64,000 nt of DNA from Phaeosaccion multiseriatum (GCA_965112735.1 OZ218952.1:5084001-5148000), one strand, 5' to 3'; positions 1 to 22,443 are shown, counted from the first letter of the stretch. Notes: generated from the sequence alone by a model not told the origin. Made by a program: numbers and translations.

Positions 1-53
1 TGCTAGTCAGTCCTGTCACCAAGTACCTACTAGTCCTAACCTCGTCCTGTTAC

Positions 54-2430
54 CTGGTATTTCTTGTACAGTGCAAACACCTCGGCCGTGTATCTGGCGG
101 GCACCGTGGTGATGGAGAATGTGGGCTTGCGGTGCTTGGCCTGTTTGGGTATCTGCTCGGGCATTTGCTTGGGCAGCGGCGGAGGAGACACCGCCATCGC
201 CGCCGGAGAGGCAATTTGAGCTTCAGTTTGAGCCTCAGTCGCACCCTCTTCTCCCTCGTGTGCCGTGGCGAGGGGCGGCGGTAGAGACGCATCTCCCCCT
301 CTGTCCTGCGGCCCTTCGCCTGAACTCCCTCCACCACCACCCACTTGACTTGCCGCAGCACCGCCCAACCCCCCCCCTGCCGTCGCTATTGTCAATGCTT
401 CTAGCGTATGTCCTGCGCCCTCCTCGTCGCTGACCCTCATGGCCGTCGCCGGATCCCGTCCCCCCTCGGAGAGCTCCCCCCCGGGGCGCAGCTGGAAGTT
501 GAGGAAGCCGTTGTCCGCCGCCGTTACGCTGCGCAGCCCCGACGAGAGCAGGGCCGAGGGAGACGTCAGAGAGGCCAGCAACAAGTGGGCGACGTCCACC
601 GGCCGGAGCACCACATGCTGTTTCCCGCCCTTGCCGCCTTTGCCGCCTTTGCCCTTCCTATTCCCACCTTCGTCTCCGGTTCCGCCATCCCCTCCTCCCC
701 CCCCCCCCCTCCTCCTCCTCCGCCTCCTCCTCCTCCTTTCCCTGCTGCCGCTGCTGCCCTCTTATTAACCATGGCTGCCAGCTTCATGGCGATGGCCGTG
801 CTGTAATCCATCACGGGCGCCAGTTGTGACTCCGCGACCCCCCCGCCGGCCCTGATCTTCTGCTTGCCCCGCAGAAGAGAGCTCGGTTTGACCGCCCCCG
901 CCTTGCCCACCTCCCCTAGGTCCTCTAGCGACACCCCAGGAAGCTTCCCTGCATCCACCACCTCCCACACCGCCTGCCGGACAGCGGCCTCCAGCCTCCG
1001 ACACACCGCGGCCCGCTGTATCACCAACTGCTGCTGCTGCTGTTGACCTGTGGCATCCTTCTGCCCCACCTTCTGTTCTGCCCCCGTCTCCCTCCGATTC
1101 GATGCGTGGGAAGCCTCGCAGGCCCCGTTCGGAGACCGTTCCGCTGATCCTTGTTCCTTGTGTGTCCCCCCCGCGCCTCCCGCCCGCTGTCGCTTCGGCT
1201 TCTTAGAGGGGCCGACCCGCATCCTGCTCTTCTGCCTCTCTGCCTCAACTTCAGCCTCCGTGTAATCGTGGGTCTCCTTATCAGTCTCCTTCTTAGTCTC
1301 CATCTCTGCGCCCCCCTCCTCCCCCTCCTCCAACATACCCTCCAGGCCCCCCTCCAGGCCCCCCTCCAGCAGTCTGCGCAGCTTGCCTTTGACCCTGCGC
1401 TGCTGCTTGTCGGGTGAGAAGTGAGTCACGTCGAGGCGGATGGTGTACTGGGGGCAGCACGTCTGCCGGACAGAGGCAGAGAGGGGGGGGGGTTGGCGAG
1501 AGTAAGAGTCTGCTTCGCGTTCCAGTTTGCCTGTGGTGGGCGCAAATGCAAGGAACGGCCCAGGCTGCGGTACAGTGGCCGACTGATGGCACAGGAGGGA
1601 GTAAATTGTGAGGGATGAAGCGCACGGGTGAAGTATTGTCTGCACATGACTGTGCAGGACGCTGCAGGACAGGAGCAACAGTGGAGCAGCAGCGGATCAA
1701 CAGCGTAGCAGCAACAGCAGTACCTTGTCCATGATGGGCTTGTAGAGGAAGGTCCCGCTCCTCCTCCAGCCCCGCTCCAGCAGCAGTTGGTAATCCGTCG
1801 CCGTCAAGCGCTCCGCCATCATGCCGTACGACAGGGAGGTCTTCGCCGCGGCCTTGCAGTAGCCTGGGGAGCCGCACAAGGGCGCGATTGGCTGGGGGTT
1901 AGACAGTAGACTCGTTCTGGGAAATGGGTCCCCACGGAACATGGCCTTTTTTGCACACCGCTGGGCGGCGCTAATCCGACGAAAGCTGGGGATGAGGGAA
2001 GGACTTGTATGGACAACAGTGGCTACGGTACTTTGATCCCCTGCACAGGGACAGCACAGGCACAAGTACAGTGATCCCTGCGCCGACGGAATGGCGGGAG
2101 CGAGCCATCGCCGCTCACCAGAGCAACCGCAGCAGCAGAAGACGCGTCAGCGACACACCAAGAGGAGCTTAGCGGGAAGGCAGCCATATAGCACGGAGAT
2201 TCGTCTGCTGCCTTATCCTCCTCCTCCTCCTTACCGCATTTGTTGCCGTAGGGCCCGCAAAGCACCACGACAGAGGGACCCACTGTCCCAAATTCTCCTG
2301 CGGCGCTGCTGACCTCTGAAGCATCTCCACTACTGCTGCTGTTGTCACTGCTGCTCACGTTGCTGCTACTACTGCTGCTACTGCTACTTCTCACACTTCG
2401 CCGCTTCTCGGCCATCTTTTTCTTCGGCAT
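54..2430 (-). CDS. ATE1: Arginyl-tRNA--protein transferase (ATE1), 5' exons; continues off the left edge of the window
   Basis: Exons 2430/2415-2235, 1863-1724 and 1462-54 join as ...NKC|GYCK...DYQLLLERGWRRSGTFLYKPIMDK|TCCPQYTIRLD (ATE_N hallmarks) and ...FALYKKYQ| (start of ATE_C). Junctions are GT-AG. There is one apparent 1-nt frameshift at the poly-C run 697-709. Confidence 0.92.
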
Positions 2431-2457
2431 TACGCAAAGTACTCGCTGGTGAGAATC

Positions 2458-3150
2458 CTGGCGACGATGTGGTTCATCAACTGCTGCAGCCGGGTCCAAA
2501 ATCCAAAATTAAAATTTCTCTCCCCCTCTTGATCCTCTTGCTTGTATTTCAGCAGAGCCACCACGCTTCACCACAAGCTTGACTTTGGCGAGTGCCTAGA
2601 ATAATCGCGGGCCATGCCGAGAACCAAAGGAGAAGGGAAGGGGAGGGGGGGATGACGGAGACGCCAGGCAAAGAAGGCCGTGTCTCAAACGGAGGGTAAG
2701 AGCTATGACCACCAGAGCCCAGTAGAAAGTGGAGGAGGCGATGGTAGGAAGGCAAAGCAAGATGCCCGAACACTCTTGGCGGAGCGGCAGGCGACAATCG
2801 ACGCGCACAACACGTTCGAGAGAGGCGTGTCTGCGGCGAGGGAGGGCCTTCACGACAACGCTGCCCTGTGCTGGTGGCAACCGGAGCACCTACTTTGCCG
2901 TCCGAGCCAAGAGCTACGAGGAGATTGGGGAGAGCAAGAAGGCTTTTTACGACATAACCGGCCGAGGCTATCCGGCTCAATCACGAAAAGGTGATCTGCT
3001 GCCTGCCTCAAGAACCCTTCTTGAAACACAGCCAGCCATGCCGGGACCATCGCCTCTCTAGCTTCGCAAGACGCGGAGGCGTGCAGGCCGCTGGATCCAA
3101 GGGAAGACGGGTGGGTAAGGCAGAGAGAGATTGCGCTTTACTATTAGCTT
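2458..3150 (+). pseudogene. Truncated, internally deleted duplicate of the TPR gene at 23.3-29.7 kb
   Basis: 2458-3068 aligns by eye to ~23282-23890 (upstream region, exon 1, start of intron 1). 3069-3150 aligns to ~28500-28580. The copy contains deletions and frameshifts relative to the intact gene. Confidence 0.9.
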
Positions 3151-4608: not shown

Positions 4609-7600
4609 TTACACTGCAGAGAGGGAAAGTAAGAGAGAGGAGGAGAGAGGAGGAGGACGGTTGTGAGAATAGGTGATGCTATGACACGCACGTCCCCCGC
4701 CCATCCCTCACCATCATCACAAGCATCTCCTTCTCCGTCGTCGTCAAAGTCCTCTTGGCCCGCGTTGGCAACCGCCGGGCAACTACATGGCACATAAGGA
4801 AGAGGGCAATACGGGGCAGGCGGTGGTCGAGTCGCGAGGCACAGTCATCAGTTTCGTTACCAGTGGATAAGCGTACGCTGGCGGACTGCGCAAGACAGAG
4901 AGGTGCTAGCTAAGAGGCAGCGCACGCACGCACACACAAACATGATCAGCAGGGACTGAAGCTGGCATATAGAATGCGCCGCACATGCACATCAGCAAGC
5001 AATGCTCACTCCTCCTCCACCCACTCGGTCCATACTTTCTGAACCACTCACTTGTCTCTAATGGCCACAATGCCGTCCCCGTCGGTGTCTGCATCAGGAG
5101 GGCCGCCACCGCCGCACGAGACGCAAGGGGAGGAGGGGGGTGGGGTTGGCAGAAGCATTTATGTCAGACTGGAAGGCGATGAGTGGGCAGTGACGACAAG
5201 GGAATCCGAGGTGCTCATTTGCCGCGCGAAGAAAAGCAGCGAACGCCGGAGCGAGAGCGACGAGAGGAATGAGCTCAAATCATGCATCCTGCGGGCCCCT
5301 TTTCTCCTCACTATGCATGATTCTCGTTCCTACCTGCACATGGTCCCGTCGAGCCTCTGCCTCCAGCACTTTTGGTGTCGAAGTGTCGCACCGGGCGGGG
5401 TTCACGAGAAAAGAGATTTCACCGCACAACCATAACGTGAGCAACAAAGCGCAACACATTGCAACAAGGGGGGGGGGGGGACGTGAGCGCAACAACTGTG
5501 TGTGGCGGAGAGAAGAGCAGCCAGGCATGTCGGCGACGCACTCCTCGACATGTTGGCCGGCCAACACTCAAACGGGCCGGGGAGCAAAGGGCCTTGTCAA
5601 GTGCTGTGCTTTGCTTGCTACCACTCACCAGGCTTCCCGAATGCAGCATGCTGGGCCAGATTGCTGTGCCTGTTGGTCACAGCCGGGAGTGATAGAGCGT
5701 GCAAAGGAGGTGAGGATCGGTCAGTCATCTTATTACATGGGGTGGTCGGCCTAGGCGTGCACGCATGTCTCCTCGACTCCCCGTTGATCGGGCTGGTCCA
5801 TGTGTGGAGGTCAGGAGAGGGGGGAAGTCTGAAGCGTTGGCCGTGTAGCGATACAACAGGAGCAAGACACACAACCCAAAGCCAGGTGGTGATAGCGAGG
5901 GCGGACTTGGGCCGCACGATTACTCACCGGACAGCGCCTTTCGCCGTTGCAGTTGGCGGCTGAAGTGTCGAAAATCAGGGCACCCTGTGATTGAAGGGGC
6001 GCAAGGCGGGTGTGGATGAGAAAAGGTCAGGCGGCCGCAGGTCAGCAGAGGGATACAGCGGAGGTCAGAAGACGGGGGAAGCTTGAGGCATGGGCCGTGT
6101 AGCGATACGACAGGAGCAAGACACTCGACCCTAAGCCAGATGACAGCGAGAGCGGACATGATCCGCCCGAATACTCACCACACAGGACTCTTGCCCCTCG
6201 CAGGTGGCAATTGAAGTGTCATAAAACTCGGCACCCTGTGATTGAAGGGGCGCAAGGTGGTGTGGATGAGAAAAGACGGCCGCAGGTCAGCAGACGGATA
6301 CGGTGTGGAGGTCAGGAGAGGGGGGAAGCGTGAGGTGAGGGCCGTGTAGCGATACAACAGGAGCAAGGCACTCAACCCTAAGCCTGATGACAGCGAGAGC
6401 GGACATGATCCGCCCGATAACTCACCCCACAGGACCTGTCCCCGGTGCAGGTGGCAGTCGAAGTGTTGTAAAAAATGGCTCGCTGTGATGGAAGAGGCGT
6501 AAGGTGGGGAAGAGAGAAGAGGGCCGCAGGTCAGCAGAGGGATACAGGCAGTGTGGAGGTCAGGAGAGGTGGGAACAAGCTTGAAGTGTGGGCCGTGTAG
6601 CGGTAGGATAGGAGCAAGACACAAAACCCTAAGCCAGGTGGCAGCAGGAGCGGACTTGGGCCTGTGGTGATTAGGTGGCCGCAGGGACCCAAGCCAAGCG
6701 CTAATAATGGCTTAGGTCCCTGGGACAAAAAAAAAAGCGGGGGGGGCAATCCCCCAGTTATACATGTAACCTTTGACCAAAAATGCGCGAGTGGCACTAT
6801 CGGAACACAGCCATACACGTTCCCCGCCCCTGCTGCGGAGTATTGCAATCAATGAAGGTCGAACCCATATGCATACTTTTGTGGTGAATGGCCCCAGGCA
6901 GGGACCTAAGCCATTATTAGCGGCTTATAGTGGCGAAGGTCCCTGAGGCCACCTAACCACCACAGGCCGCACGATTACTCACCAGACAGCCAATTACATC
7001 GCAGGTGGCAGTCGAAGTGTCGTAAAAGTCGGCAAACTGTGATAGAAGGGGCGCAAGGTGGGTGTGGCCGAGAAAAGAGGGCCGCAGATCAGCAGAGGGA
7101 TACAGCGGAGGTCAGAAGACGGGGGAAGTTTGAGGCATGGGCCGTGTAGCGATACAACAGGAGCAAGACACTCAACCCTAAGCCAGATGACAGCGAGAGC
7201 GGACATGATCCGCCCGATTACTCACCCCACAGGAACCTCTCCCCGTGCAGCTGGCAGCCAAATTGTCGTAAAAATCGGTACGCTGTGATTGAAGTGGGGC
7301 CAGAGGGGTATGGACGAGATAAAAAGACCGCAGGTTAGCAGAGGGATTTGTGTGGAGGAGGTCAGGAGATGGGGGAAGCTTGAAGTGTGGGACGTGTAGC
7401 GGTAGGATAGGAGCAAGGCACACAACCCTAAGCCAGGTGGCAGCAGGAGCGGACTTGGGCCGCACGATAACTCACCAAACAGGACAGCAGCCCCGTGCAG
7501 CTGGCCGTCGAAGTGTTGTAAAAATTGGCTTGCTGTGATTGAAGGGGCGCAAGGTGGTGTGGACGAGATCAGAAAGCCGCAGGACAGCAAAGGGATTTGT

Positions 7601-10600
7601 GTGAAGGAGGTCAGGAGATGGGGGAAGCGTGAGGTGTGGGCCGTGTAGCGATACAACAGGAGCAAGACACACAACTCTAATCCAGGTTGCAGCAGGAGCG
7701 GACTTGGGCCGCACGATTACTCACGTGACAGGAGTATTGCCCCGTGCAGCTGACAGTCGAAGTGTTGTAAAAATTGGCATCCTGCGATTGAAGGGGGGGC
7801 AGGGGGGTATGGACGATACAAGAGGGCCGCAGAGGGGTACATTGGGGAGGTCAGCAGAGGGGGAAGCGTGAGGTAAGGGCCACGCAGCGATACAACAGGA
7901 GCGAGACACACAAAGCTAACCCAAATGACAGCGAGAGCGGACCTGGGCCGCACGATTACTCACGTGACAGGAGGATCGCGCCATGCAGCTGGCCACTGAA
8001 GTGTTGTAAAACTCGGCACCCTGTGATTGAAGGGGCGCAAGGTGGTGTGGACGAGATAAGAAAGCCGCAGGACAACAGACAGATACAGCGTGGAGGTCAG
8101 GAGAGGCGGGAAGCTTGAGGTGTGGGCCGTGTAGCGGTAGGATAGGAGCAAGACACACAACCCTAAGCCAGGTGGCAGCAGGAGCGGACTTGGGCCGCAC
8201 GATACTCACCCCACAGCAAAAATCCTTCGTGCAGCCGGCAGTCGAACTGTCGTAAAATTCGGCATCCTGGGATTGAAGGGGCGCAAGGTGGTGTGGACGA
8301 GAAAAGAGGGCCGCAGGACAACAGACGGATACAGCCAGTGTGGAGGTCAGGAGATGGGGGAAGCGTGAGGTGTGGGCCGTGTAGCGATACAACAGGCAGG
8401 AGCGAGACACACAAAGCCAACCCAAATGACAGCGAGAGCGGACCTGGGGCGCCCGATTACTCACGTCACAGGAGTCTTGCCCCTCGCAGCTGGCAGTCGA
8501 AGTGTCGTAAAACTCGGCGTTCTGCAATTGAAGGGGCGCAAGGTGGTGTGGACGAGAAGAGACGGCCGCAGGTCAGCAGACGGATACAGTGTGGAGGTCA
8601 GGAGAGGGGAGAAGCGTGAGGTGTGGGCCATGTAGCGGTAGGATAGGAGCGAGGCACACAAAGCTAACCCAAATGACAGCGAGAGCAGACCTGGGCCGCA
8701 CGATTACTCACCAGACATGAGTCTTGCGCCTTGCAGCTGGCCGTCGAAGTGTTGTAAAACTCGGCACCCTGTGATTGAAGGGGCGCAAGGTGGTGTGGAC
8801 AAGAAAAGAGGGTCGCAGGACAGCAGAGGGGCACATTGCTGAGGTCAGGAGAGGTGGGAAGCTTGAAGCATGGGCCGTGTAGTGATACAACAGGAAGAGA
8901 CACACAAAGCCAACCCAAATGACAGCGAGAGCGGACATGATCCGCCCGATTACTCACCCCACAGGAACCTCTCCCCGTGCAGCTGGCAGTCAAATTGTCG
9001 TAAAACTCGGCTTCCTGCGATTGAAGTGGGGCCAGAGGGGTATGGACGAGATAAAAAGACCGCAGGTCAGCAGAGGGATTTGTGTGGAGGTCAGGAGAGG
9101 TGGGAAGCTTGAAGTGTGGGACGTGTAGCGGTAGGATAGGAGCAAGACACACAACCCTAAGCCAGGTGGCAGCAGGAGCGGACTTGGGCCGCACGATTAC
9201 TCACGTTACAGGACTTTCGCCCCGTGCATTGGGCAGTCGAAGTGTCGTGAAAATTGGCATCCTGTGATGGAACGGGCGCAAAGTGAGTGTGGCCGCAGGT
9301 CAGCAGAGAGGGGTACAGTGTGGAGGTCAGGAGAGGGGGGAAGCGTGAGGTGAGGGCCGCGCAGCGATACAACAGGAGCGAGACACACAAAGCTAACCCA
9401 AATGACAGCGAGAGCGGACCTGGGCCGCACAATTACTCACGTTACAGGACTCTTGCCCTATGCAGCTGGCAGTCGAAAGGCTGTAAAACTCGGCACCCTG
9501 TGATTGAAGGGGCGCAAGGTGGTGTGGACGAGATAAGAAAGCCGCAGGACAACAGACAGATACAGCGTGGAGGTCCGGAGATGGGGGGAAATTTGAGGTG
9601 TGGGACGTGTGGCGATACGATAGGAGCAAGACACACAACCCTAAGCCAGGTGCAGCAGGAGCGGACTTGGGGCGCACGATTACTCACCCCACAGGACGCA
9701 TCCCTCCAGCAGCTGGCAGTCGAAGTGTTGTAACAGACGGATACAGTGTGGAGGTCAGGAGATGGGGGAAGCTTGAGGTGAGGGCCGCGCAGCGATACAA
9801 CAGGAGCGAGACACACAAAGCTAACCCAAATGACAGCGAGAGCGGACCTGGGCCGCACGATTACTCACGTCACAGGAGTCTTGCCCCTTGCAGCTGGCCG
9901 TCGAAGTGTTGTAAAACTCGGCATCCTGTGATTGAAGGGGGGGCAGGGGGGTATGGACGAGACAAGAGGGCCGCAGAGGGGTACATTGGGGAGGTCAGTA
10001 GAGGGGGAAGCTTGAGGTGAGGGCCGCGCAGCGATACAACAGGAGCGAGACACACAAAGCCAACCCAAATGACAGCGAGAGCGGACATGATCCGCCCGAT
10101 TACTCACCCCACAGGAACTTCTCCCCGTGCAGCTGGCAGTCAAATTGTCGTAAAACTCGGCTTCCTGCGATTGAAGTGGGGCCAGAGGGGTATGGACGAG
10201 ATAAAAAGACCGCAGGTCAGCAGAGGGATTTGTGTGGAGGTCAGGAGAGGTGGGAAGCTTGAAGTGTGGGACGTGTAGCGGTAGGATAGGAGCAAGACAC
10301 ACAACCCTAAGCCAGGTGGCAGCAGGAGCGGACTTGGGCCGCACGATTACTCACGTTACAGGACTTTCGCCCCGTGCATTGGGCAGTCGAAGTGTCGTGA
10401 AAATTGGCATCCTGTGATGGAACGGGCGCAAAGTGAGTGTGGCCGCAGGTCAGCAGAGAGGGGTACAGTGTGGAGGTCAGGAGAGGGGGGAAGCGTGAGG
10501 TGAGGGCCGCGCAGCGATACAACAGGAGCGAGACACACAAAGCTAACCCAAATGACAGCGAGAGCGGACCTGGGCCGCACAATTACTCACGTTACAGGAC

Positions 10601-13600
10601 TCTTGCCCTATGCAGCTGGCAGTCGAAAGGCTGTAAAACTCGGCACCCTGTGATTGAAGGGGCGCAAGGTGGTGTGGACGAGATAAGAAAGCCGCAGGAC
10701 AACAGACAGATACAGCGTGGAGGTCCGGAGATGGGGGGAAATTTGAGGTGTGGGACGTGTAGCGATACGATAGGAGCAAGACACACAACCCTAAGCCAGG
10801 TGCAGCAGGAGCGGACTTGGGGCGCACGATTACTCACCCCACAGGACGCATCCCTCCAGCAGCTGGCAGTCGAAGTGTTGTAAAAATGGGCTTGCTGTGA
10901 TTGAAGGGGCGCAAGGTAGGTGTGCACGAGAAAAGAGGGCCGCAGGACAGCAGACGGATACAGTGTGGAGGTCAGGAGATGGGGGAAGCTTGAGGTGAGG
11001 GCCGCGCAGCGATACAACAGGAGCGAGACACACAAAGCTAACCCAAATGACAGCGAGAGCGGACCTGGGCCGCACGATTACTCACGTCACAGGAGTCTTG
11101 CCCCTTGCAGCTGGCCGTCGAAGTGTTGTAAAACTCGGCATCCTGTGATTGAAGGGGGGGCAGGGGGGTATGGACGAGACAAGAGGGCCGCAGAGGGGTA
11201 CATTGGGGAGGTCAGCAGAGGGGGAAGCTTGAGGTGAGGGCCGCGCAGCGATACAACAGGAGCGAGACACACAAAGCCAACCCAAATGACAGCGAGAGCG
11301 GACATGATCCGCCCGATTACTCACCCCACAGGAACTTCTCCCCGTGCAGCTGGCAGTCAAATTGTCGTAAAACTCGGCTTCCTGCGATTGAAGTGGGGCC
11401 AGAGGGGTATGGACGAGATAAAAAGACCGCAGGTCAGCAGAGGGATTTGTGTGGAGGTCAGGAGAGGTGGGAAGCTTGAAGTGTGGGACGTGTAGCGGTA
11501 GGATAGGAGCAAGACACACAACCCTAAGCCAGGTGGCAGCAGGAGCGGACTTGGGCCGCACGATTACTCACGTTACAGGACTTTCGCCCCGTGCATTGGG
11601 CAGTCGAAGTGTCGTGAAAATTGGCATCCTGTGATGGAACGGGCGCAAAGTGAGTGTGGCCGCAGGTCAGCAGAGAGGGGTACAGTGTGGAGGTCAGGAG
11701 AGGGGGGAAGCGTGAGGTGAGGGCCGCGCAGCGATACAACAGGAGCGAGACACACAAAGCTAACCCAAATGACAGCGAGAGCGGACCTGGGCCGCACAAT
11801 TACTCACGTTACAGGACTCTTGCCCTATGCAGCTGGCAGTCGAAAGGCTGTAAAACTCGGCACCCTGTGATTGAAGGGGCGCAAGGTGGTGTGGACGAGA
11901 TAAGAAAGCCGCAGGACAACAGACAGATACAGCGTGGAGGTCCGGAGATGGGGGGAAATTTGAGGTGTGGGACGTGTGGCGATACGATAGGAGCAAGACA
12001 CACAACCCTAAGCCAGGTGCAGCAGGAGCGGACTTGGGGCGCACGATTACTCACCCCACAGGACGCATCCCTCCAGCAGCTGGCAGTCGAAGTGTTGTAA
12101 CAGACGGATACAGTGTGGAGGTCAGGAGATGGGGGAAGCTTGAGGTGAGGGCCGCGCAGCGATACAACAGGAGCGAGACACACAAAGCTAACCCAAATGA
12201 CAGCGAGAGCGGACCTGGGCCGCACGATTACTCACGTCACAGGAGTCTTGCCCCTTGCAGCTGGCCGTCGAAGTGTTGTAAAACTCGGCATCCTGTGATT
12301 GAAGGGGGGGCAGGGGGGTATGGACGAGACAAGAGGGCCGCAGAGGGGTACATTGGGGAGGTCAGCAGAGGGGGAAGCTTGAGGTGAGGGCCGCGCAGCG
12401 ATACAACAGGAGCGAGACACACAAAGCCAACCCAAATGACAGCGAGAGCGGACATGATCCGCCCGATTACTCACCCCACAGGAACTTCTCCCCGTGCAGC
12501 TGGCAGTCAAATTGTCGTAAAACTCGGCTTCCTGCGATTGAAGTGGGGCCAGAGGGGTATGGACGAGATAAAAAGACCGCAGGTCAGCAGAGGGATTTGT
12601 GTGGAGGTCAGGAGAGGTGGGAAGCTTGAAGTGTGGGACGTGTAGCGGTAGGATAGGAGCAAGACACACAACCCTAAGCCAGGTGGCAGCAGGAGCGGAC
12701 TTGGGCCGCACGATTACTCACGTTACAGGACTTTCGCCCCGTGCATTGGGCAGTCGAAGTGTCGTGAAAATTGGCATCCTGTGATGGAACGGGCGCAAAG
12801 TGAGTGTGGCCGCAGGTCAGCAGAGAGGGGTACAGTGTGGAGGTCAGGAGAGGGGGGAAGCGTGAGGTGAGGGCCGCGCAGCGATACAACAGGAGCGAGA
12901 CACACAAAGCTAACCCAAATGACAGCGAGAGCGGACCTGGGCCGCACAATTACTCACGTTACAGGACTCTTGCCCTATGCAGCTGGCAGTCGAAAGGCTG
13001 TAAAACTCGGCACCCTGTGATTGAAGGGGCGCAAGGTGGTGTGGACGAGATAAGAAAGCCGCAGGACAACAGACAGATACAGCGTGGAGGTCCGGAGATG
13101 GGGGGAAATTTGAGGTGTGGGACGTGTAGCGATACGATAGGAGCAAGACACACAACCCTAAGCCAGGTGCAGCAGGAGCGGACTTGGGGCGCACGATTAC
13201 TCACCCCACAGGACGCATCCCTCCAGCAGCTGGCAGTCGAAGTGTTGTAAAAATGGGCTTGCTGTGATTGAAGGGGCGCAAGGTAGGTGTGCACGAGAAA
13301 AGAGGGCCGCAGGACAGCAGACGGATACAGTGTGGAGGTCAGGAGATGGGGGAAGCTTGAGGTGAGGGCCGCGCAGCGATACAACAGGAGCGAGACACAC
13401 AAAGCTAACCCAAATGACAGCGAGAGCGGACCTGGGCCGCACGATTACTCACGTCACAGGAGTCTTGCCCCTTGCAGCTGGCCGTCGAAGTGTTGTAAAA
13501 CTCGGCATCCTGTGATTGAAGTGGGGCAGGGGGGTATGGACGAGACAAGAGGGCCGCAGAGGGGTACATTGGGGAGGTCAGCAGAGGGGGAAGCTTGAGG

Positions 13601-16600
13601 TGAGGGCCGCGCAGCGATACAACAGGAGCGAGACACACAAAGCCAACCCAAATGACAGCGAGAGCGGACATGATCCGCCCGATTACTCACCCCACAGGAA
13701 CTTCTCCCCGTGCAGCTGGCAGTCAAATTGTCGTAAAACTCGGCTTCCTGCGATTGAAGTGGGGCCAGAGGGGTATGGACGAGATAAAAAGACCGCAGGT
13801 CAGCAGAGGGATTTGTGTGGAGGTCAGGAGAGGTGGGAAGCTTGAAGTGTGGGACGTGTAGCGGTAGGATAGGAGCAAGACACACAACCCTAAGCCAGGT
13901 GGCAGCAGGAGCGGACTTGGGCCGCACGATTACTCACGTTACAGGACTTTCGCCCCGTGCATTGGGCAGTCGAAGTGTCGTGAAAATTGGCATCCTGTGA
14001 TGGAACGGGCGCAAAGTGAGTGTGGCCGCAGGTCAGCAGAGAGGGGTACAGTGTGGAGGTCAGGAGAGGGGGGAAGCGTGAGGTGAGGGCCGCGCAGCGA
14101 TACAACAGGAGCGAGACACACAAAGCTAACCCAAATGACAGCGAGAGCGGACCTGGGCCGCACAATTACTCACGTTACAGGACTCTTGCCCTATGCAGCT
14201 GGCAGTCGAAAGGCTGTAAAACTCGGCACCCTGTGATTGAAGGGGCGCAAGGTGGTGTGGACGAGATAAGAAAGCCGCAGGACAACAGACAGATACAGCG
14301 TGGAGGTCCGGAGATGGGGGGAAATTTGAGGTGTGGGACGTGTGGCGATACGATAGGAGCAAGACACACAACCCTAAGCCAGGTGCAGCAGGAGCGGACT
14401 TGGGGCGCACGATTACTCACCCCACAGGACGCATCCCTCCAGCAGCTGGCAGTCGAAGTGTTGTAACAGACGGATACAGTGTGGAGGTCAGGAGATGGGG
14501 GAAGCTTGAGGTGAGGGCCGCGCAGCGATACAACAGGAGCGAGACACACAAAGCTAACCCAAATGACAGCGAGAGCGGACCTGGGCCGCACGATTACTCA
14601 CGTCACAGGAGTCTTGCCCCTTGCAGCTGGCCGTCGAAGTGTTGTAAAACTCGGCATCCTGTGATTGAAGGGGGGCAGGGGGGTATGGACGAGACAAGAG
14701 GGCCGCAGAGGGGTACATTGGGGAGGTCAGCAGAGGGGGAAGCTTGAGGTGAGGGCCGCGCAGCGATACAACAGGAGCGAGACACACAAAGCCAACCCAA
14801 ATGACAGCGAGAGCGGACATGATCCGCCCGATTACTCACCCCACAGGAACTTCTCCCCGTGCAGCTGGCAGTCAAATTGTCGTAAAACTCGGCTTCCTGC
14901 GATTGAAGTGGGGCCAGAGGGGTATGGACGAGATAAAAAGACCGCAGGTCAGCAGAGGGATTTGTGTGGAGGTCAGGAGAGGTGGGAAGCTTGAAGTGTG
15001 GGACGTGTAGCGGTAGGATAGGAGCAAGACACACAACCCTAAGCCAGGTGGCAGCAGGAGCGGACTTGGGCCGCACGATTACTCACGTTACAGGACTTTC
15101 GCCCCGTGCATTGGGCAGTCGAAGTGTCGTGAAAATTGGCATCCTGTGATGGAACGGGCGCAAAGTGAGTGTGGCCGCAGGTCAGCAGAGAGGGGTACAG
15201 TGTGGAGGTCAGGAGAGGGGGGAAGCGTGAGGTGAGGGCCGCGCAGCGATACAACAGGAGCGAGACACACAAAGCTAACCCAAATGACAGCGAGAGCGGA
15301 CCTGGGCCGCACAATTACTCACGTTACAGGACTCTTGCCCTATGCAGCTGGCAGTCGAAAGGCTGTAAAACTCGGCACCCTGTGATTGAAGGGGCGCAAG
15401 GTGGTGTGGACGAGATAAGAAAGCCGCAGGACAACAGACAGATACAGCGTGGAGGTCCGGAGATGGGGGGAAATTTGAGGTGTGGGACGTGTAGCGATAC
15501 GATAGGAGCAAGACACACAACCCTAAGCCAGGTGCAGCAGGAGCGGACTTGGGGCGCACGATTACTCACCCCACAGGACGCATCCCTCCAGCAGCTGGCA
15601 GTCGAAGTGTTGTAAAAATGGGCTTGCTGTGATTGAAGGGGCGCAAGGTAGGTGTGCACGAGAAAAGAGGGCCGCAGGACAGCAGACGGATACAGTGTGG
15701 AGGTCAGGAGATGGGGGAAGCTTGAGGTGAGGGCCGCGCAGCGATACAACAGGAGCGAGACACACAAAGCTAACCCAAATGACAGCGAGAGCGGACCTGG
15801 GCCGCACGATTACTCACGTCACAGGAGTCTTGCCCCTTGCAGCTGGCCGTCGAAGTGTTGTAAAACTCGGCATCCTGTGATTGAAGGGGGGGCAGGGGGG
15901 TATGGACGAGACAAGAGGGCCGCAGAGGGGTACATTGGGGAGGTCAGCAGAGGGGGAAGCTTGAGGTGAGGGCCGCGCAGCGATACAACAGGAGCGAGAC
16001 ACACAAAGCCAACCCAAATGACAGCGAGAGCGGACATGATCCGCCCGATTACTCACCCCACAGGAACTTCTCCCCGTGCAGCTGGCAGTCAAATTGTCGT
16101 AAAACTCGGCTTCCTGCGATTGAAGTGGGGCCAGAGGGGTATGGACGAGATAAAAAGACCGCAGGTCAGCAGAGGGATTTGTGTGGAGGTCAGGAGAGGT
16201 GGGAAGCTTGAAGTGTGGGACGTGTAGCGGTAGGATAGGAGCAAGACACACAACCCTAAGCCAGGTGGCAGCAGGAGCGGACTTGGGCCGCACGATTACT
16301 CACGTTACAGGACTTTCGCCCCGTGCATTGGGCAGTCGAAGTGTCGTGAAAATTGGCATCCTGTGATGGAACGGGCGCAAAGTGAGTGTGGCCGCAGGTC
16401 AGCAGAGAGGGGTACATTGGGGAGGTCAGCAGAGGGGGAAGCTTGAGGTGAGGGCCGCGCAGCGATACAACAGGAGCGAGACACACAAAGCTAACCCAAA
16501 TGACAGCGAGAGCGGACCTGGGCCGCACAATTACTCACGTTACAGGACTCTTGCCCTATGCAGCTGGCAGTCGAAAGGCTGTAAAACTCGGCACCCTGTG

Positions 16601-19600
16601 ATTGAAGGGGCGCAAGGTGGTGTGGACGAGATAAGAAAGCCGCAGGACAACAGACAGATACAGCGTGGAGGTCCGGAGATGGGGGGAAATTTGAGGTGTG
16701 GGACGTGTAGCGATACGATAGGAGCAAGACACACAACCCTAAGCCAGGTGCAGCAGGAGCGGACTTGGGGCGCACGATTACTCACCCCACAGGACGCATC
16801 CCTCCAGCAGCTGGCAGTCGAAGTGTTGTAAAAATGGGCTTGCTGTGATTGAAGGGGCGCAAGGTAGGTGTGCACGAGAAAAGAGGGCCGCAGGACAGCA
16901 GACGGATACAGTGTGGAGGTCAGGAGATGGGGGAAGCTTGAGGTGAGGGCCGCGCAGCGATACAACAGGAGCGAGACACACAAAGCTAACCCAAATGACA
17001 GCGAGAGCGGACCTGGGCCGCACGATTACTCACGTCACAGGAGTCTTGCCCCTTGCAGCTGGCCGTCGAAGTGTTGTAAAACTCGGCATCCTGTGATTGA
17101 AGGGGGGGCAGGGGGGTATGGACGAGACAAGAGGGCCGCAGAGGGGTACATTGGGGAGGTCAGCAGAGGGGGAAGCTTGAGGTGAGGGCCGCGCAGCGAT
17201 ACAACAGGAGCGAGACACACAAAGCCAACCCAAATGACAGCGAGAGCGGACATGATCCGCCCGATTACTCACCCCACAGGAACTTCTCCCCGTGCAGCTG
17301 GCAGTCAAATTGTCGTAAAACTCGGCTTCCTGCGATTGAAGTGGGGCCAGAGGGGTATGGACGAGATAAAAAGACCGCAGGTCAGCAGAGGGATTTGTGT
17401 GGAGGTCAGGAGAGGTGGGAAGCTTGAAGTGTGGGACGTGTAGCGGTAGGATAGGAGCAAGACACACAACCCTAAGCCAGGTGGCAGCAGGAGCGAACTT
17501 GGGCCGCACGATTACTCACGTTACAGGACTTTCGCCCCGTGCATTGGGCAGTCGAAGTGTCGTGAAAATTGGCATCCTGTGATGGAACGGGCGCAAAGTG
17601 GGTGTGGCCGCAGGTCAGCAGAGAGGGGTACAGTGTGGAGGTCAGGAGATGGGGGAAGCTTGAGGTGAGGGCCGCGCAGCGATACAACAGGAGCGAGACA
17701 CACAAAGCTAACCCAAATGACAGCGAGAGCGGACCTGGGCCGCACGATTACTCACGTCACAGGAGTCTTGCGCCTTGCAGCTGGCCGTCGAAGTGTTGTA
17801 AAACTCGGCATCCTGTGATTGAAGGGGGGGCAGGGGGGTATGGACGAGACAAGAGGGCCGCAGGTCAGCAGACGGATACAGTGTGGAGGTCAGAAGACGG
17901 GAGGAGCTTGAGGCGTGGGCCGTGTAGCGATACAACAGGAAGAGACACACAACTCTAAGCCATGTGGCAGCAGGAGCGGACTTGGCCCGCCCGATAACTT
18001 ACACGACAGGACTCTGGCCCCGTGCAGCTGGCCGTCGAAGTGTTGTAAAACTCGGCACCCTGTGATTGAAGTGGCGCAAGGTGGTGTGGACGAGAAAAGA
18101 GGGCCGCAGGACAGCAGAGGGGCACATTGGGGAGATGAGGAGAGGGGGGAGAGCTTGAAGTGTGAGACGTGTAGCGGTACGATAGGGGCAAAATATATCA
18201 GCCAGAAGGGTGTTGACGAGAAATGACGCAGGAGGACAGCAGAGGGACACATGGAAGAGGTTAGGAGAAGGGGCAAGATTGAGGTGTGGGTCGTGTAGCA
18301 GTACGACAGGGCGAAGGGGCGAAAGAGATGAGCAAGTAGCTGCCCGTTAATATGAACTGCCGCACGGAGGCAGCGTCCGGCACACCAAGATCACGACATG
18401 GGCGTGTTTAAAGAGCAGAGGGGGTTCCATGCATGGGTGGGGAGGAGGGGGCAGACAGGGGACAGGTGAGGGGGCAGGAGCTGCAACAACAGTCCTCCTT
18501 ACTCACTTTGCAGCTCCCCGTGTCCGCGCACTCAACGAAGCAAGTCTTCATGGCGGGCCGATAAGGCGAGATGCGCCAAAAGGGGCATATGGCAGCCATG
18601 TCGCGATGAGCAGAGCACGATTAGGGCAGCAGGAGGATGAAAGGGTGAGGGTACCTCTGTGCACACAGGGTAGGACGCAAATGGCACGAGCACGAAGATA
18701 CAATGAAGGAGAAATACAGTGGCCCCCAGCCAGCTAAATCAAAGAAAAACTCAATCGCAATCACCAGGGGATGAGGCCACACTCACAAACACCTTCTCAG
18801 TGCACACGAATCCTCCCCGCCATGCTCCCACGTAGCCAAGTCAAAACTGCCAGCGTAATGACTGCGAACACTTACCTCAAATGTGGCGCCCTGCACACGC
18901 CGAAGAAGCAACGCCATCATAAGCAGAAAGTCAGAACGGGGGTGGCCATGAAGAGCCACAGAGCCACCACAAAGAGGGTGGTGATGAAGCAGCGGCCCGC
19001 CGTGAGGACGATCGGCAGTGAGAAGGGGGGGGAATCAAAGATGACGCCCACACAATCGTTTGAGATGCGCGGTGAGTCACCACCAGGGCATGAGGGAGGC
19101 CCAGCGACAGGCAGCAGAGAAGGAGGGAGGCGGTACAGCGCAAAGGTGAGAAAGGGCGAAGGAATAAAAGTTAGTCTCGTGGCCCCAATCCTCCAAGAGG
19201 CATGACCTCATGAAGGCGTCACCATCAGCCCCAGCCCCACTCCAGCTGTCATGCCCAGCTCTTTGTATAGGTAGCGAGTCAACGACACTATTGGCAGGGG
19301 TACTCTGTACTAATAGGTAGAGGTAGAGCCGAAGTGTCTCTTGTCAGGCAGCTGGCTCTTAATGCAGCGAGAGAGAGCGCGGAGAGTGTTTTATTGGGGG
19401 GAGTCAAGTAGGGTGAGTCAAGTACGGTGAGAAGCTTTGGTGGAAGCTGCGCACCCACCAGGCAGAAGTCGTCCTCACACTTAATCGGAGAAGAGTAGCT
19501 CGTGCAGGTGCATGTGTTGGAGAGAATGTCGTAGGCTCCTCCGCCCGCCAAGCAGGCCGTCCGCATCCTCAGGTCTGAAGGTCATGGAGGATTCAGCAGG

Positions 19601-22443
19601 ATATATAGGTAGACAACAAGGCGCGGAGCAGCAAAGGAGATAAGAAGCACAAAGGGAGTGAGTAGCCCAACGGGGGGGGGGAGGGCGTGAGCGGCACGCC
19701 AGAGTAATTTTGCTTGTATGGCTTCGACATTTACGGCGGGGAAATGATCGAACGGCAGCTCAACCACGGCAGCTGACAAGTATTGATCGCCCTCATTTTA
19801 CCCCGCGGGAGCATGACGCAGCCACGTGTACTTACCGAAAGTGTATGAGTCCTCTGCGGGTGAGGGGAAAGTGCTGGCGTAGAGCTCAGTAGTGCCGTCC
19901 GCGTCGAGGATCTTGAAGCTCGCGCCGTTGATGCGGCCCTTGCATGTCTGGCAATCGAGACGGTTTGTGACCTCGCAGTACGCGATGGGTTGGTCAGCTC
20001 CGCCGGAAAGGCTCAGAGTGAGGCGGCCGGGTTCTCCTGCGTGCCCGTCGGAGTGACAGAAGGTTGTGTCGTCGTCGTCGGTGCATCGAGTGGCAAGAAA
20101 CGTGGAGGGTCTGAAGAGGGAGCTCAAGGTGATGCCGTCTAGCGGAATCTTCGTGCTGCTGCCGCCATCATAACATGCAACTTCAGCCAGATTGAGGATA
20201 CCATCAGGCCCAGGGTTAGTGTCCGCCTGGAGCACTTCAATCACGACCCGCCTGTCAGAGTTAGGGCACATGAGTAGCGAGGGCAGGGCGGGGGGAGGGA
20301 GGGCGCCGACATGTAAGACGGAGACCTCGCATGCGCTGGAGTTGATGGGCTGTCTGCACTTCGACATTTAGGCAGCAGGAGGGGTGGCTCAGTAAGGTGA
20401 GGAGAAAAGGAAGGGGCCATGGGGAGCTCTCCTTCTCAGAGGGGCACTTACTTGCCGGGATCTTGGCACAGGCGAGCAAGCAGAAGAAGAGTGCACAATG
20501 GTCCCAAGGGCAGCCATCCACGGAGCCACCCGAGCGAACGCACATGCGTTCGAAGAGGGAAGGCAATGTGAACAGCCCGTGGGAGGAGAGAATCAACACC
20601 ATCACAGAGGTCCAGACATGAGAACAGGCAAAGAGCAGATGGGAGTGAAACAAGGAGTAGGCGTCATTGTCAGGCGGTGCCCGCGATAGATCAAAGCACA
20701 CAGCCCTGTCGAAGCCGGAGGAGGAGGATAAGGGGGGTGGTACCAGCATACGAAGGGAGAGGGAGGAAAGAGGGCAAAGGAGGAGGAGGGCATGGCATAG
20801 GCTACTCGACAAGGCCAGCACATATGTTCCGCGACTACGGACAGCGCGCAAGTGAGGAGGAGGAGGAGGAGGAGGTAGAGGTGGAGGTGGAGGGGGTGGT
20901 GGTGGTGGTGGTGGTGGTGGTGGTGGAGGAGGAGGAGGAGGAGGAGGAGGTGGAGGAGGAGGAGGAGGAGGAGGAGGAGGAGGAGGAGGAGGAGGAGGAC
21001 CAGGGGGAGGAGGAGGAGGAGCGGGGATGAAGAAAGCGTCTCCCCCTGAAGCCGCACGCGGCCTTTGTGTGTTACCACCACGTCCAACCAAGTCCTCTTC
21101 AGAACACTGAGATCTCCTCACGCACCTTTGCTTCGCTCGCAGATGAAGCCAGCCGCAGGGCCAGGGTCGCTGCAGGGAATATCGCTCCAGCCGGGCAGAA
21201 GGCTGCCTCCGAAGTAATACGAGCCGCAGAGCTGCTTGCCGCGCCAATTGTTCGGCTGGTCTTCCTTCCAGCCCCATTCATCGTCTGTCACCGTTTTGTC
21301 CGCCGTCGCCGTGCCGTCTGCCCATGTGAATGCTGTTTTGCCATTGGCAGTGCCTGGTTCCCGCTCGAAGCTAACCCAGACATGGGCGTTGTTGATATCT
21401 GGGATGAGTCCCTTGACGTAGTCGTCTTCGGTCTGGTCGTTGACGGACACGAGGGCGGCCCCATTCAGCTCACACCGGGCAGTCGCTTGGTCGCGAGTGA
21501 TGCCAGGCTGAGGGACGTAGAAGTACTCCGAGGCCGAAGAGGTGTAGGTATTGCTCTGGGTGAAGTCCACTGCTCAGTGACAGCCACCCATGGTGTGTCA
21601 CAACCATTCGAGGAGTAGGGGCCGCAAGTGAAGCAGGCCGCACGGCAGCAGGAGGAAGACGCGAGCAAAAGGAGGAAGACACGAGTAGCAGCGGAAGGGT
21701 GTGTTGGGGGGCGGGTGAATTCAAATCAGTGGCTTAAGATGAGGTTAGACCAGAAGGGGAAGAGAGGGGGGGGAATACTTGTTGGAGGAGGAGGCGGGGG
21801 AGGAGGATGTGGTGGTGGAAGAGTTGGTGGAGTAGGAGGAGGAGCGAGGTGGAAGAGGATGAAGAGGGCGTTTCCCCCTTAAGCAATGCGCACAATAGTG
21901 TGGTACCGCCACATCCAACCAAGCCCTCTTCAGGCCACTACCTTACGCACCTATGCCTCGCTCGCAGACGAAGCCAACCACGTCAGTGTAGTCGCATGGA
22001 ACATCGCTCCAGCCTTGGTTATCGGTGTCTTCGAGCCAATACGAGCCGCAGAGCTGCGCGTCGCCTCTACTGTTCGGCTGACCGGTCTTCCAGCCCCATG
22101 CATTGGCCCCGTTCACCACCTCGTTCGCCGTCGCCGTGCCATCTGCCCACTTGAACGCTGTTGTGTCGCGGGTGGTGCCTGGGTCACGCTCGAAGCTAAC
22201 CCAGACATGGCCGTTGTTGACACCTTGGAGGAGATCCTTGACGTGATTGTCTTCCTCCTGAGTATTGACGGACACAAGGGCCGCCCCATAGCGCGCACAT
22301 GTGGCAATCGCTTGGTCGCGAGTGACGCCGGCCTGAGGGATGTAAACATGTTCTGAATCACTGGTGCTGTGGGACGTGAATTGCTGACAGACTGCGCGCG
22401 GTGGTGCAGCGAGGCACAACAGCAGAAAAAGGGCCCGACTCAT
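4609..22443 (-). CDS. Secreted multi-lectin protein: signal peptide, 2x C-type lectin, F-type-lectin/F5-8C-like domain, Cys linker, up to 47 exon-encoded 19-aa Cys repeats, TSP type-3 repeat
   Basis: Phase-consistent exons: 22443-21951 (MSRALFLLLCLAA...; CTLD1 with W..GQPN, WSDVPC, GFVCE), 21569-21126 (CTLD2), 20461-20452, 20251-19836 (FCHS...NRLDCQTCKGR), 19574-19459, 18890-18876, 18545-18507, then the 57-nt exon array 18059-5928. Small exons at ~5.7-5.3 kb are unresolved. 5088-5052 + 4782-4712 give [36 protein letters not shown], and the stop is at 4611-4609. No TM segment seen. Confidence 0.8.
5801..18310 (-). repeat. Tandem array of 50 ~245-bp intron+exon units; 5-mer higher-order repeat (1216-1217 bp, or 1149-1150 bp with a 67-bp deletion) in the core and divergent monomers at the edges
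   Basis: The + strand motif TACTCAC (GTGAGTA donor on -) and CTG(T/C)GATTGAAG (CTTCAATC(A/G)CAG acceptor on -) recur 57 nt apart in each unit. Near-identical ORFs recur at 9082, 10232, 11449, 12599, 13815, 14964, 16181 and 17397. Confidence 0.97.
6663..6964. mobile_element. 302-bp MITE with TGT...ACA ends and a GGCC 4-bp target duplication, inserted in an array intron
   Basis: TIRs tgtggtgattaggtggccgcagggacc / ggtccctgaggccacctaaccaccaca. Internal inverted repeat gctaataatggcttaggtccctg / cagggacctaagccattattagc. The empty site ggacttgggccgcacg is present in neighbouring units. GGCC lies at 6659-6662 and 6965-6968. Confidence 0.9.
20855..21020. repeat. (GGA)n/(GGT)n microsatellite in a lectin-gene intron
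   Basis: Directly visible trinucleotide runs. The poly-P/L/E ORFs across them are spurious. Confidence 0.95.

Follow-up and report, generated by a model that had tools for sequence, protein, structure and literature searches.

A lectin gene of Phaeosaccion multiseriatum with an array of one-repeat-per-exon cassettes predicted to encode a beta-helix rod

Fibrillar collagens are encoded by 54-bp phase-0 exons of fixed length, which hold an integral number of repeats and have been expanded by tandem duplication. The passengers of the bacterial autotransporter adhesins AIDA-I, TibA and Ag43 have a 19-residue repeat and share an extracellular, rod-like, right-handed beta-helix of about 19 residues per coil. 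The same period is found in the Pfam family DUF7640 (PF24646), a family without a described function, and in unnamed 19-aa relatives that have its cysteine spacing and its register x-A-x-F/I-...-C-x-G-x-x-[AS]-C-x. In the ROCO-LRR and NB-ARC-TPR genes of Ectocarpus and other brown algae, one repeat per exon, exon shuffling and diversifying selection are reported (PMC3341825; PMC11378527).

The locus considered here lies in a window of 64,000 nucleotides from Phaeosaccion multiseriatum (GCA_965112735.1 OZ218952.1:5084001-5148000), with positions counted from its first letter. [quoted passage not shown] It differs from them in that its repeat is a 19-aa cysteine-containing coil of a predicted beta-helix rather than a 24-aa LRR or 34-aa TPR, that its product would be secreted, with lectin heads and a thrombospondin (TSP) type-3 tail and no ROC-COR or NB-ARC signalling module, and that its array, at 47 exons, is much longer and contains a near-identical five-unit higher-order repeat. 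Short, fixed-length, tandemly expanded phase-0 exons are shared with the fibrillar collagen genes, whose arrays nevertheless encode another fold and are ancient and stable, without hypervariable codons set against homogenised introns. We consider it probable that the locus is a genuine gene, very rich in exons, which encodes an adhesin-like secreted glycoprotein of ~1,460 aa with a germline-diversified, one-coil-per-exon beta-helix rod.

Anatomy of the array and of the gene

The array of one-repeat-per-exon cassettes within the lectin gene is real.

5928..18059, minus strand: coil-exon array, 47 intact phase-0 exons (46 of 57 nt, one of 54 nt)

A strict minus-strand scan for AG, 57 nt and GTRAG returned 46 units, from 18059 to 5928, and the four gaps that it left, read separately, held a 54-nt in-frame exon (7036-6983, encoding FADFYDTSTATCDVIGCL) and three truncated copies. 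The original prediction of 50 cassettes with 57-nt exons is thus right as to an array of repeat exons, of which 47 are live and three dead, and right as to length for 46 exons, the remaining one being 54 nt. Its count of 47 intact, stop-free exons that give 19 distinct peptides and 892 aa in total was reproduced exactly, and the nine peptides that it quoted are correct in sequence and coordinates. AG/GTRAGT borders are present in 47 of 47 intact exons. Introns within the array measure 178-198 nt, except for three of 371 nt and one of 500 nt. Indels that would break the frame are absent from the exon block, whereas gaps occur in 51 of the 212 aligned intron columns. Every one of the 19 exon types has C12 and C18, and A2, F4 and A10 are nearly invariant. 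Stop-free exons are weak evidence when taken alone, because 17 of 18 exon types also leave one reverse frame open. On neither strand does an ORF of more than about 200 aa run across the units, and Rfam gave no match.

The array is continuous in frame with unique exons on both sides, which together make up the following model.

4609..22443, minus strand: whole predicted gene, 58 exons and 1,463 codons, ATG at 22443, TAA at 4611-4609
21951..22443, minus strand: exon 1, signal peptide and first C-type lectin domain
21122..21569, minus strand: exon 2, second C-type lectin domain
19836..20251, minus strand: exon 3, 138-aa all-beta domain
19459..19574, minus strand: exon 4, Cys-rich lead-in, ending ...IKCEDDFCL
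18876..18890, minus strand: micro-exon GATFE, 15 nt, phase 0-0, first third of a degenerate coil
18507..18545, minus strand: exon TCFVECADTGSCK, phase 0-0, remainder of the degenerate first coil
5629..5669, minus strand: 41-nt exon AQQSGPACCIREA (+2 nt), required by the frame, capping the rod C-terminally
5334..5368, minus strand: exon (C)AGGRGSTGPCA, 35 nt, placed by the frame only
5052..5088, minus strand: exon (D) plus 11 residues, first half of the TSP type-3 repeat
4712..4782, minus strand: exon (N) plus 23 residues, second half of the TSP type-3 repeat

Joined through canonical AG/GT sites, these exons form one open frame whose first stop is codon 1464, and the conceptual protein consists, in order, of a signal peptide, two C-type lectin domains, the all-beta domain, the rod and a TSP type-3 repeat. 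The tie between array and lectin gene, proposed from the shared register of the lead-in exons GATFE and TCFVECADTGSCK, is borne out by this frame, and both exons lie where they had been placed. The signal peptide was called by inspection of the hydrophobic N-terminus MSRALFLLLCLAAPP. Exons 1 and 2 match Pfam Lectin_C (cut-off 22.6 bits) with 50.2 bits (E 4.9e-13) and 41.1 bits (E 3.3e-10), respectively; the donor of exon 2, GTGAGG at 21121, is in frame, and a GTGCGT 4 nt upstream is out of frame. Exon 3 matched nothing in Pfam, and its single-sequence AF2 model is poor (pLDDT 40.6); an atlas feature search returned F5_F8_type_C clusters at 0.95-0.96, a lead only, and the domain is possibly F5/8 type C (discoidin)-like.

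Downstream of the array, five exons continue the frame to the TSP type-3 repeat and the stop, with a phase chain of 0>2>1>2>1 that is unbroken as far as the stop codon. Within the model, splice signals are at their weakest in the 35-nt exon at 5368-5334, whose acceptor is AAG and whose donor is GTAGGA. Pfam TSP_3 scores 30.1 bits (cut-off 25; E 3.7e-7) on the spliced join of the exons at 5052..5088 and 4712..4782, and a match above the cut-off arises only across that predicted join. A direct splice from 18507 to 5669, past the whole array, also keeps the frame.

Repeat family and predicted fold

The original prediction recognised no named family for the repeat, a view that no longer holds. A phmmer search of five cassettes against 1.84 billion proteins gave 14 matches at E<=1e-3 (best 3e-12), nine of which have the same 19-aa C-x5-C-x12 unit in a register equal to the exon borders; spacing and register recur in one longer member of the cluster of a match. 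One of the proteins matched, P0009 (E 6.8e-5 in the same search), is itself a strong member of DUF7640 (E 3e-42). Comparison of unit with unit by hhalign gave E 6.8e-5 and a probability of 63%, with columns 5-19 aligned on 5-19. Five cassettes (95 of the 892 aa) scored 16.7 bits against DUF7640 (E 0.009), below its gathering threshold of 28.1, over profile positions 2-84 of 121. By the phmmer and hhalign comparisons, the repeat belongs to a widespread 19-aa C-x5-C-x12 family linked to DUF7640, and no protein more than 36% identical was found in a collection of 15 billion. Its 19-aa relatives, which come from metagenomes and transcriptome-like contigs, encode their repeats continuously, whereas an intron separates every coil here: a 907-aa relative, one of the nine, has ~16 perfect units in an intron-free ORF on a 5.5-kb contig, and one of 494 aa is a continuous ORF on a 1.9-kb contig.

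The expectation that concatenated repeats would form a Cys-containing solenoid agrees with the AF2/AlphaFold model of five cassettes, a predicted beta-solenoid with one coil per exon and two strands per 19 residues (pLDDT 97.9, pTM 0.88) that agrees with an AFDB cluster model at TM 0.92. With VIA-align, the closest solved fold is TibA (Z 11.3, rmsd 2.1 Å over 93 of 95 residues), below which come Ag43 (Z 7.4-7.9), the 19-residue Ca-beta-helix of MpAFP (3p4g, Z 8.2) and RTX domains. A bacterial autotransporter with FYNTSTAGSA... repeats is also among the sequence matches. The gene described here is eukaryotic and intron-rich, it ends in the TSP type-3 repeat and a stop where these adhesins have an autotransporter beta-barrel (PF03797), which is absent, and each of its coils has two cysteines that the bacterial TibA and Ag43 repeats lack. 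The modelled likeness to TibA and Ag43 is taken as architectural analogy only and does not demonstrate common descent.

Turnover of the units and fast codons

The order of exon types along the array is AB CDEFG CDEFG CDE(x)G CDEFG CDE(x)G CDEFG CDE(x)G C HIJKLMNOPQRS, where (x) is a dead F cassette. Tandem Repeats Finder (TRF) reports a 247-bp tandem array over 5802-18162, along with 483-bp and higher periods. The repeat blocks, remnants and insertion at the locus are as follows.

9262..17576, minus strand: five-unit higher-order repeat, seven copies of 1216-1217 bp, or 1149-1150 bp where the F unit is dead
14466-14421, 12100-12055 and 9733-9688, minus strand: identical dead F-type cassettes, each a 46-nt 3' remnant with its donor kept and no acceptor
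18233..18314, minus strand: exon-less relic of the intron of a unit, inside the 447-nt intron before cassette 1
6659..6968, no strand assigned: MITE-like insertion, 310 bp, 31-nt terminal inverted repeats with a 93.5% match

Substitutions distinguish the seven higher-order copies at eight columns, and there are two 1-nt indels, all of these in introns, in addition to a 67-nt deletion; five- and ten-unit higher-order repeats are ~99.5-100% identical, and just five types account, through recent copying, for 35 of the 47 exons. That single deletion, found in the dead cassettes, took away the acceptor together with 56 nt of intron and 11 nt of exon. The relic was recovered by blastn of one unit against the first intron, which gave two matches (18314-18233 and 18189-18102), and the MITE-like insertion sits in the intron following the 54-nt cassette. 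The three dead cassettes and the MITE show that the locus also decays. In public DNA, the depth of the C unit is ~6-8 times that of single-copy sequence in runs X5-X7, a rough match to the eight copies assembled, and contigs from the public runs found (n=4, all DNA) are colinear with the genome across introns and contain no splice joints. The almost unchanged, seven-fold amplification of CDEFG points to unequal crossover, in agreement with what had been proposed for the array.

Variation among exons falls on six codons of the 19-aa unit (positions 1, 3, 13, 15, 16 and 19). Diversity is 0.51 at these codons, 0.16 in introns and 0.15 at other exon sites, and in a permutation test none of 100,000 draws reached the mean diversity of the fast codons. 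Parsimony on the unit tree gives 4.2-4.6 changes per site for the fast codons, 0.95 for introns and 1.2 for other exon sites. The six codons therefore change about 4-5 times faster than introns, which upholds the earlier suggestion of germline diversification for these particular codons, and divergence of whole exons (0.26) exceeds that of introns (0.16). Classical pN/pS is about 1.3-1.4 for the unit as a whole and 1.05 for its 13 slower codons, values from which purifying selection is not demonstrated. Positions 1, 13-16 and 19 are also the variable ones in relatives such as the 907-aa protein, and the fast positions are probably surface-exposed.

Proposed molecule and alternative readings

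The account that we favour places carbohydrate-binding heads (two C-type lectin domains and the beta domain) N-terminal to a long rigid rod, with a short Cys-rich segment and a TSP type-3 repeat of calcium-binding type C-terminal to it. The rod would be a parallel beta-helix of 19 residues per coil with a core of A2, F4, A10, C12 and C18, each coil coming from its own 57-nt phase-0 exon. Beta-solenoids usually rise ~4.8 Å per coil, and 47 coils would give a rod of ~22 nm. In the germline, the locus would expand and contract as units of an exon plus an intron undergo unequal crossover or replication slippage, in steps of one, two, five or ten; the latest event would be the seven-fold amplification of a five-coil block, in which the dead cassette was carried along three times. 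Selection has probably favoured coils that differ from one another on a conserved scaffold, since the fast positions outpace introns, vary in relatives and are probably surface-exposed. All intact cassettes would be expected to be spliced in constitutively. What the analysis demonstrates is the anatomy, the frame, the domains, the homology of the repeat to existing proteins, the predicted fold, the difference in rates and the higher-order repeats; expression of the gene, the disulfide pattern of the coils, exposure of the fast codons at the surface, constitutive splicing and a role in adhesion or recognition are inferred.

Constitutive inclusion is not the only way to read an array in which, with 47 of 47 exons symmetric, any subset would keep the frame. 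As the original prediction proposed, variable subsets of phase 0-0 cassettes might be joined into rods differing in length and surface, with Dscam as a loose parallel, and the AF2 model suggests that a beta-helix should tolerate the loss of whole coils. Short introns, here ~190 nt, suit intron-definition splicing, under which exon skipping is rare; all units have strong, near-identical donors, acceptors and pyrimidine tracts, the signature of constitutive exons; and a Dscam-type choice of one among many would be structurally meaningless for coils that follow one another in one rod. Skipping would, moreover, mostly alter length, because 35 of the 47 exons copy five types. Precedent by analogy exists in the tandem one-LRR-per-exon ROCO genes of brown algae, reported as alternatively spliced (PMC11378527), but splicing-generated diversity of rods is unlikely here. 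Less credible again is a dead or never-expressed satellite, derived from an exon-intron unit of the lectin gene and now skipped or silent. Higher-order repeats typical of satellites, the three dead cassettes, the exon-less relic, the MITE insertion, a pN/pS near 1 and the in-frame direct splice past the array would all suit it, but not 47 exons free of frameshifts and stops despite exon divergence above that of introns, nor invariant cysteines, near-invariant A2, F4 and A10 and intact splice sites throughout, nor a frame that runs on through five further exons to the TSP type-3 repeat and stop.

Two further readings accept the rod and differ over its surface. Stacked T-x-T motifs (T7-S8-T9) might form a flat periodic face that binds ice or another lattice, after the model of insect antifreeze proteins, the Cys-rich beta-helix ice-binding protein of Chloromonas and the 19-residue ice adhesin MpAFP, whose structure (3p4g) matches the cassette model at the Z of 8.2 given above. 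Among algae, ice binding has been shown experimentally for a secreted, cysteine-rich, right-handed beta-solenoid that carries T-X-T motifs (PMC4838330), and T7-x-T9 occurs in 27 of 47 coils (counted manually from the peptides). The ladder is nevertheless irregular, position 7 of the amplified block being T, N, T, T and L; nothing indicates a cold-adapted organism, and sequence comparison gave no link to known ice-binding proteins. This reading is highly improbable. It is possible, though doubtful, that the rod is structural only, its fast codons reflecting selection against misregister or aggregation, or an unconstrained surface, rather than ligand recognition, with the functional surface in the lectin heads or in the conserved stripe Y5-T7-T9-S11. 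Relaxed constraint alone cannot produce 4-5 times the intron rate and some positive pressure for difference is needed, which could be pressure against aggregation rather than for recognition. Consistent with a structural role, the same positions (1, 13-16 and 19) vary in unrelated members of the family, the recent expansion brings length without new types, the solved folds closest to the model are stalks of adhesins, and amplification in blocks of five units leaves identical coils never adjacent.

Anatomy of the array and of its gene

The tandem array of the lectin gene (4609-22443, minus strand) covers approximately 5802-18162 with a period of 247 bp, further periods of 483 bp and more being reported by TRF. 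A strict unit pattern on the minus strand (AG, 57 nt, GTRAG) is matched by 46 units from 18059 to 5928, which share one frame with zero stops, and the spacing is doubled at four places in the array. Direct reading of these places reveals three dead copies, which are mutually identical truncations of the QAHFYNTSTASCWRDASCG exon without its acceptor and first 11 nt, and one in-frame exon of 54 nt. The intron after the latter has grown through insertion of a 310-bp MITE-like element, whose terminal inverted repeats measure 31 nt (93.5%) and which also has an inner perfect inverted repeat of 24 nt; no second copy of this element is present within the window. A relic of a unit, without its exon, lies in the intron preceding the first cassette. 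In all, the array comprises 47 intact exons encoding 19 distinct peptides and 892 aa, a recount that reproduces exactly the tally of the original prediction. An intronless reading of the array was rejected for either strand, as no ORF spans more than one unit, and RNA gene families gave no match.

Features of the array and the predicted gene
22443, minus strand: predicted ATG
Exon 1: C-type lectin domain (Pfam Lectin_C, E 4.9e-13)
Exon 2: C-type lectin domain (Pfam Lectin_C, E 3.3e-10)
Exon 3: 138 aa, no Pfam match
14466-14421, minus strand: truncated copy of the QAHFYNTSTASCWRDASCG exon
12100-12055, minus strand: truncated copy of the QAHFYNTSTASCWRDASCG exon
9733-9688, minus strand: truncated copy of the QAHFYNTSTASCWRDASCG exon
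7036-6983, minus strand: in-frame 54-nt exon
6659-6968: MITE-like element
4611-4609, minus strand: predicted TAA

Joining of the exons through canonical splice sites yields a single predicted open frame of 1,463 codons in 58 exons. The N-terminus preceding the lectin domains is hydrophobic and signal-like and, since the predicted product carries no membrane anchor, it should be secreted, in keeping with the earlier placement of the array within a secreted lectin gene. For exon 3, an Atlas feature search pointed to F5/8 type C domains and a word-indexed protein search was blank; an AlphaFold-type single-sequence model is too poor for use (pLDDT 40.6), and the discoidin-like assignment therefore stays a lead. 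Degenerate coils are formed by exon 4, the 15-nt micro-exon GATFE and the exon TCFVECADTGSCK, in the same register as the array, so that the in-register lead-in described originally is borne out. Five short exons follow the final cassette, and their phases (0>2>1>2>1) preserve the frame as far as the stop. The spliced join of two of these exons (5088-5052 and 4782-4712) gives a TSP_3 match of 30.1 bits against a Pfam cut-off of 25, and a version of this join with one residue wrong scores only 22.7 bits, a drop that supports the predicted splice sites.

Predicted fold and relatives of the repeat

AlphaFold2, supplied with five cassettes and an alignment of 24 homologous in-register segments, returned a model (pLDDT 97.9, pTM 0.88) that is a predicted beta-solenoid with one coil per exon, in line with the solenoids proposed originally, and in which each 19 residues contribute two short strands, at unit positions 3-4 and 9-12. 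The anatomy of the gene matches the predicted architecture of the protein exactly, one exon corresponding to one beta-helix coil, and unequal crossover alone can therefore lengthen, shorten or re-surface a rod-shaped extracellular protein. A search of the PDB by sequence gave no match, and Foldseek found nothing there below E 1, with loose pentapeptide-repeat and SV2 solenoid matches only; an AlphaFold-DB cluster model was matched by Foldseek with a TM of 0.92 and an rmsd of 1.2 Å. The first structure in VIA-align is the passenger beta-helix of TibA (Z 11.3, rmsd 2.1 Å over 93 residues), followed by RTX blocks, the MpAFP helix (19-residue, Ca-dependent) and Ag43. Both TibA and Ag43 belong to the self-associating adhesins and have stalks formed by a beta-helix (PMC9289746); the alga's gene has no autotransporter barrel, and they are accordingly regarded as architectural analogues and not as relatives.

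Relatives were sought with phmmer: a 95-aa query of five unique cassettes in succession was run against 1.84 billion representative proteins and produced 14 matches at E<=1e-3. A word-indexed protein search with five cassettes was blank, an outcome that its length filter led one to expect. Nine of the phmmer matches are built from the same 19-residue unit with two cysteines (C-x5-C-x12), the register of which coincides exactly with the exon borders in the window (e.g., GATFGDASVVTCNGDGVCD and STEFYDESVVECTGTRSCL). The cluster of one match includes a 907-aa protein with approximately 16 perfect units and no intron, on a 5.5-kb metagenome contig, and a 1.9-kb contig carries another match, an ORF of 494 aa. 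One match (P0009) is a strong member of Pfam DUF7640 (E 3e-42), several others fit that family weakly, and the five cassettes themselves score 16.7 bits against a threshold of 28.1 bits; in a unit-versus-unit profile comparison, columns 5-19 align onto 5-19 (E 6.8e-5). These links place the repeat, by sequence similarity, in a widespread uncharacterised family related to DUF7640 and lend its coding nature backing from outside the genome. The original prediction had not recognised it as a named family, a view that gives way to a DUF7640-related 19-aa family in which the cassettes' own score is sub-threshold. No literature naming DUF7640 was found, and the present locus supplies a first structural and genomic context for these 19-residue cysteine repeats.

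The remaining five matches comprise four repeat proteins deemed unrelated by inspection and one bacterial autotransporter (P0007; Pfam Autotransporter and PATR), which was treated as a look-alike. Its passenger repeats, FYNTSTAGSATITNN, strikingly resemble the FYNTSTASC core of the alga, and this resemblance may reflect either convergent evolution of a beta-helix coil motif or a very remote shared ancestor. The protein collection searched contains no close relative or spliced product, and an exact search of JGI metagenomes with a degenerate 27-mer taken from the conserved core of the exon gave no match, spliced or genomic. The literature on frustulin, which may carry similar C-x-G-x-x-x-C repeats, yielded nothing usable. 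In one environmental relative (contig L003, 5001-6160), the ORF immediately after a 19-aa-repeat protein (P0003) has a weak match to the Hint domain (hedgehog/intein), and the neighbours are of eukaryote type (WW/CobW, cytochrome b5).

Growth, divergence and possible diversification of the array

The 19 exon types, lettered A to S, follow the order AB (CDEFG)x7 C HIJKLMNOPQRS; three of the seven blocks carry a dead F unit. The differences among the CDEFG blocks, which measure 1,216-1,217 bp or, where the F unit is dead, 1,149-1,150 bp, consist of substitutions in eight columns and two indels of 1 nt, these all lying in introns, and of a deletion of 67 nt; judged from this comparison, their amplification is evidently very recent and proceeded by five and ten units at a time. 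In three DNA runs (X5-X7), the C unit has approximately 6-8 times the depth of single-copy sequence, roughly equal to the eight assembled copies, and the expansion is therefore not an assembly artefact. Both edges of the array consist of unique, more divergent units, which is the expectation under unequal crossover, and together with the near-identical five-unit blocks this supports the earlier proposal of that process. The higher-order repeat represents a very recent case of such rod expansion.

Among 16 distinct comparable units, the p-distance is 0.264 for exons versus 0.160 for introns, and the exon excess is concentrated in six codons (1, 3, 13, 15, 16 and 19).

Mean diversity and parsimony changes per site (on a tree of units) by class of site
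Six fast codons: mean diversity 0.51; parsimony changes per site 4.2-4.6
Introns: mean diversity 0.16; parsimony changes per site 0.95
Other exon sites: mean diversity 0.15; parsimony changes per site 1.2

In 100,000 random draws of six intron triplets, the fast-codon value was never reached. C12 and C18 are invariant, and A2, F4 and A10 almost so. Classical pN/pS is only 1.3-1.4; the intron is the better neutral yardstick, because whole-codon replacement inflates the 'synonymous' count. Unrelated members of the family vary at the same positions, and the fast codons are for this reason probably exposed on the coil surface. As these codons outrun the introns, the repeat family offers candidate fast-evolving adhesion or recognition molecules in the alga. 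An N-x-S/T sequon occurs at position 6 or 7 in 26 of the 47 coils. That the rod would instead be an ice-binding protein has a low probability, its T-x-T ladder being irregular.

Diversity could also be produced by splicing, through the use of subsets of cassettes, but the CAG/GTGAGT splice signals, pyrimidine tracts and CTGAC motifs are uniform and strong in all cassettes; this makes such a contribution improbable, and the intact cassettes would be expected to be constitutively included. The sequencing runs found derive from one sample, and contigs from the four examined over 17250-22500 are colinear across introns with zero splice joints, which identifies these runs as DNA. A more far-reaching reading, in which the array is a dedicated diversity generator, is considered very unlikely. 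Near-identical units would then undergo somatic recombination, or their exons regulated skipping, and the beta-helix surface would differ from one cell or clone to the next while the lectin heads stay constant; if true, this would amount, in a protist, to an equivalent of Dscam or VLR-type receptor diversification on a beta-solenoid scaffold. Variable transcripts would make the locus a new scaffold for receptor diversification, and constant transcripts, as expected under constitutive inclusion, a clean model of solenoid protein growth.

The nearest known genetic architecture is that of brown-algal LRR/TPR genes with one repeat per exon, for which exon shuffling and diversifying selection (PMC3341825, PMC11378527) and, in 2024, alternative splicing (PMC11378527) are reported. 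Exon-per-repeat logic, unit duplication and fast positions are common to these genes and the present locus, whereas the latter has another fold, a long higher-order repeat organisation and a predicted product that is a secreted lectin protein lacking any signalling module.

Surroundings and further features of the gene

The introns lying between the exons for the lectin domains contain long (GAG)n/(CCT)n tracts at 20854-21021 and 21784-21867. Translation of these tracts in one of the minus-strand frames would give mucin-like linkers rich in Ser/Thr; the gene model skips them. The exons of lectin domain 2 and of the exon 3 beta-domain (21120-21650 and 19700-20770, respectively) show variant letters and a depth 2-10 times that of neighbouring single-copy introns in the DNA runs, so that the genome holds paralogues of those exons. 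The downstream neighbour (window 1-2500, minus strand) is an ATE1-like (arginyltransferase) gene that contains long insertions of low complexity. A direct repeat of approximately 610-640 bp with 86% identity (2458-3068 and 23282-23889) brackets the entire lectin/array gene. One copy lies just upstream of the 5' end of the ATE1 gene and its partner has the corresponding place upstream of the lectin gene, an arrangement which suggests that the approximately 20-kb segment is the product of a segmental duplication or part of one.
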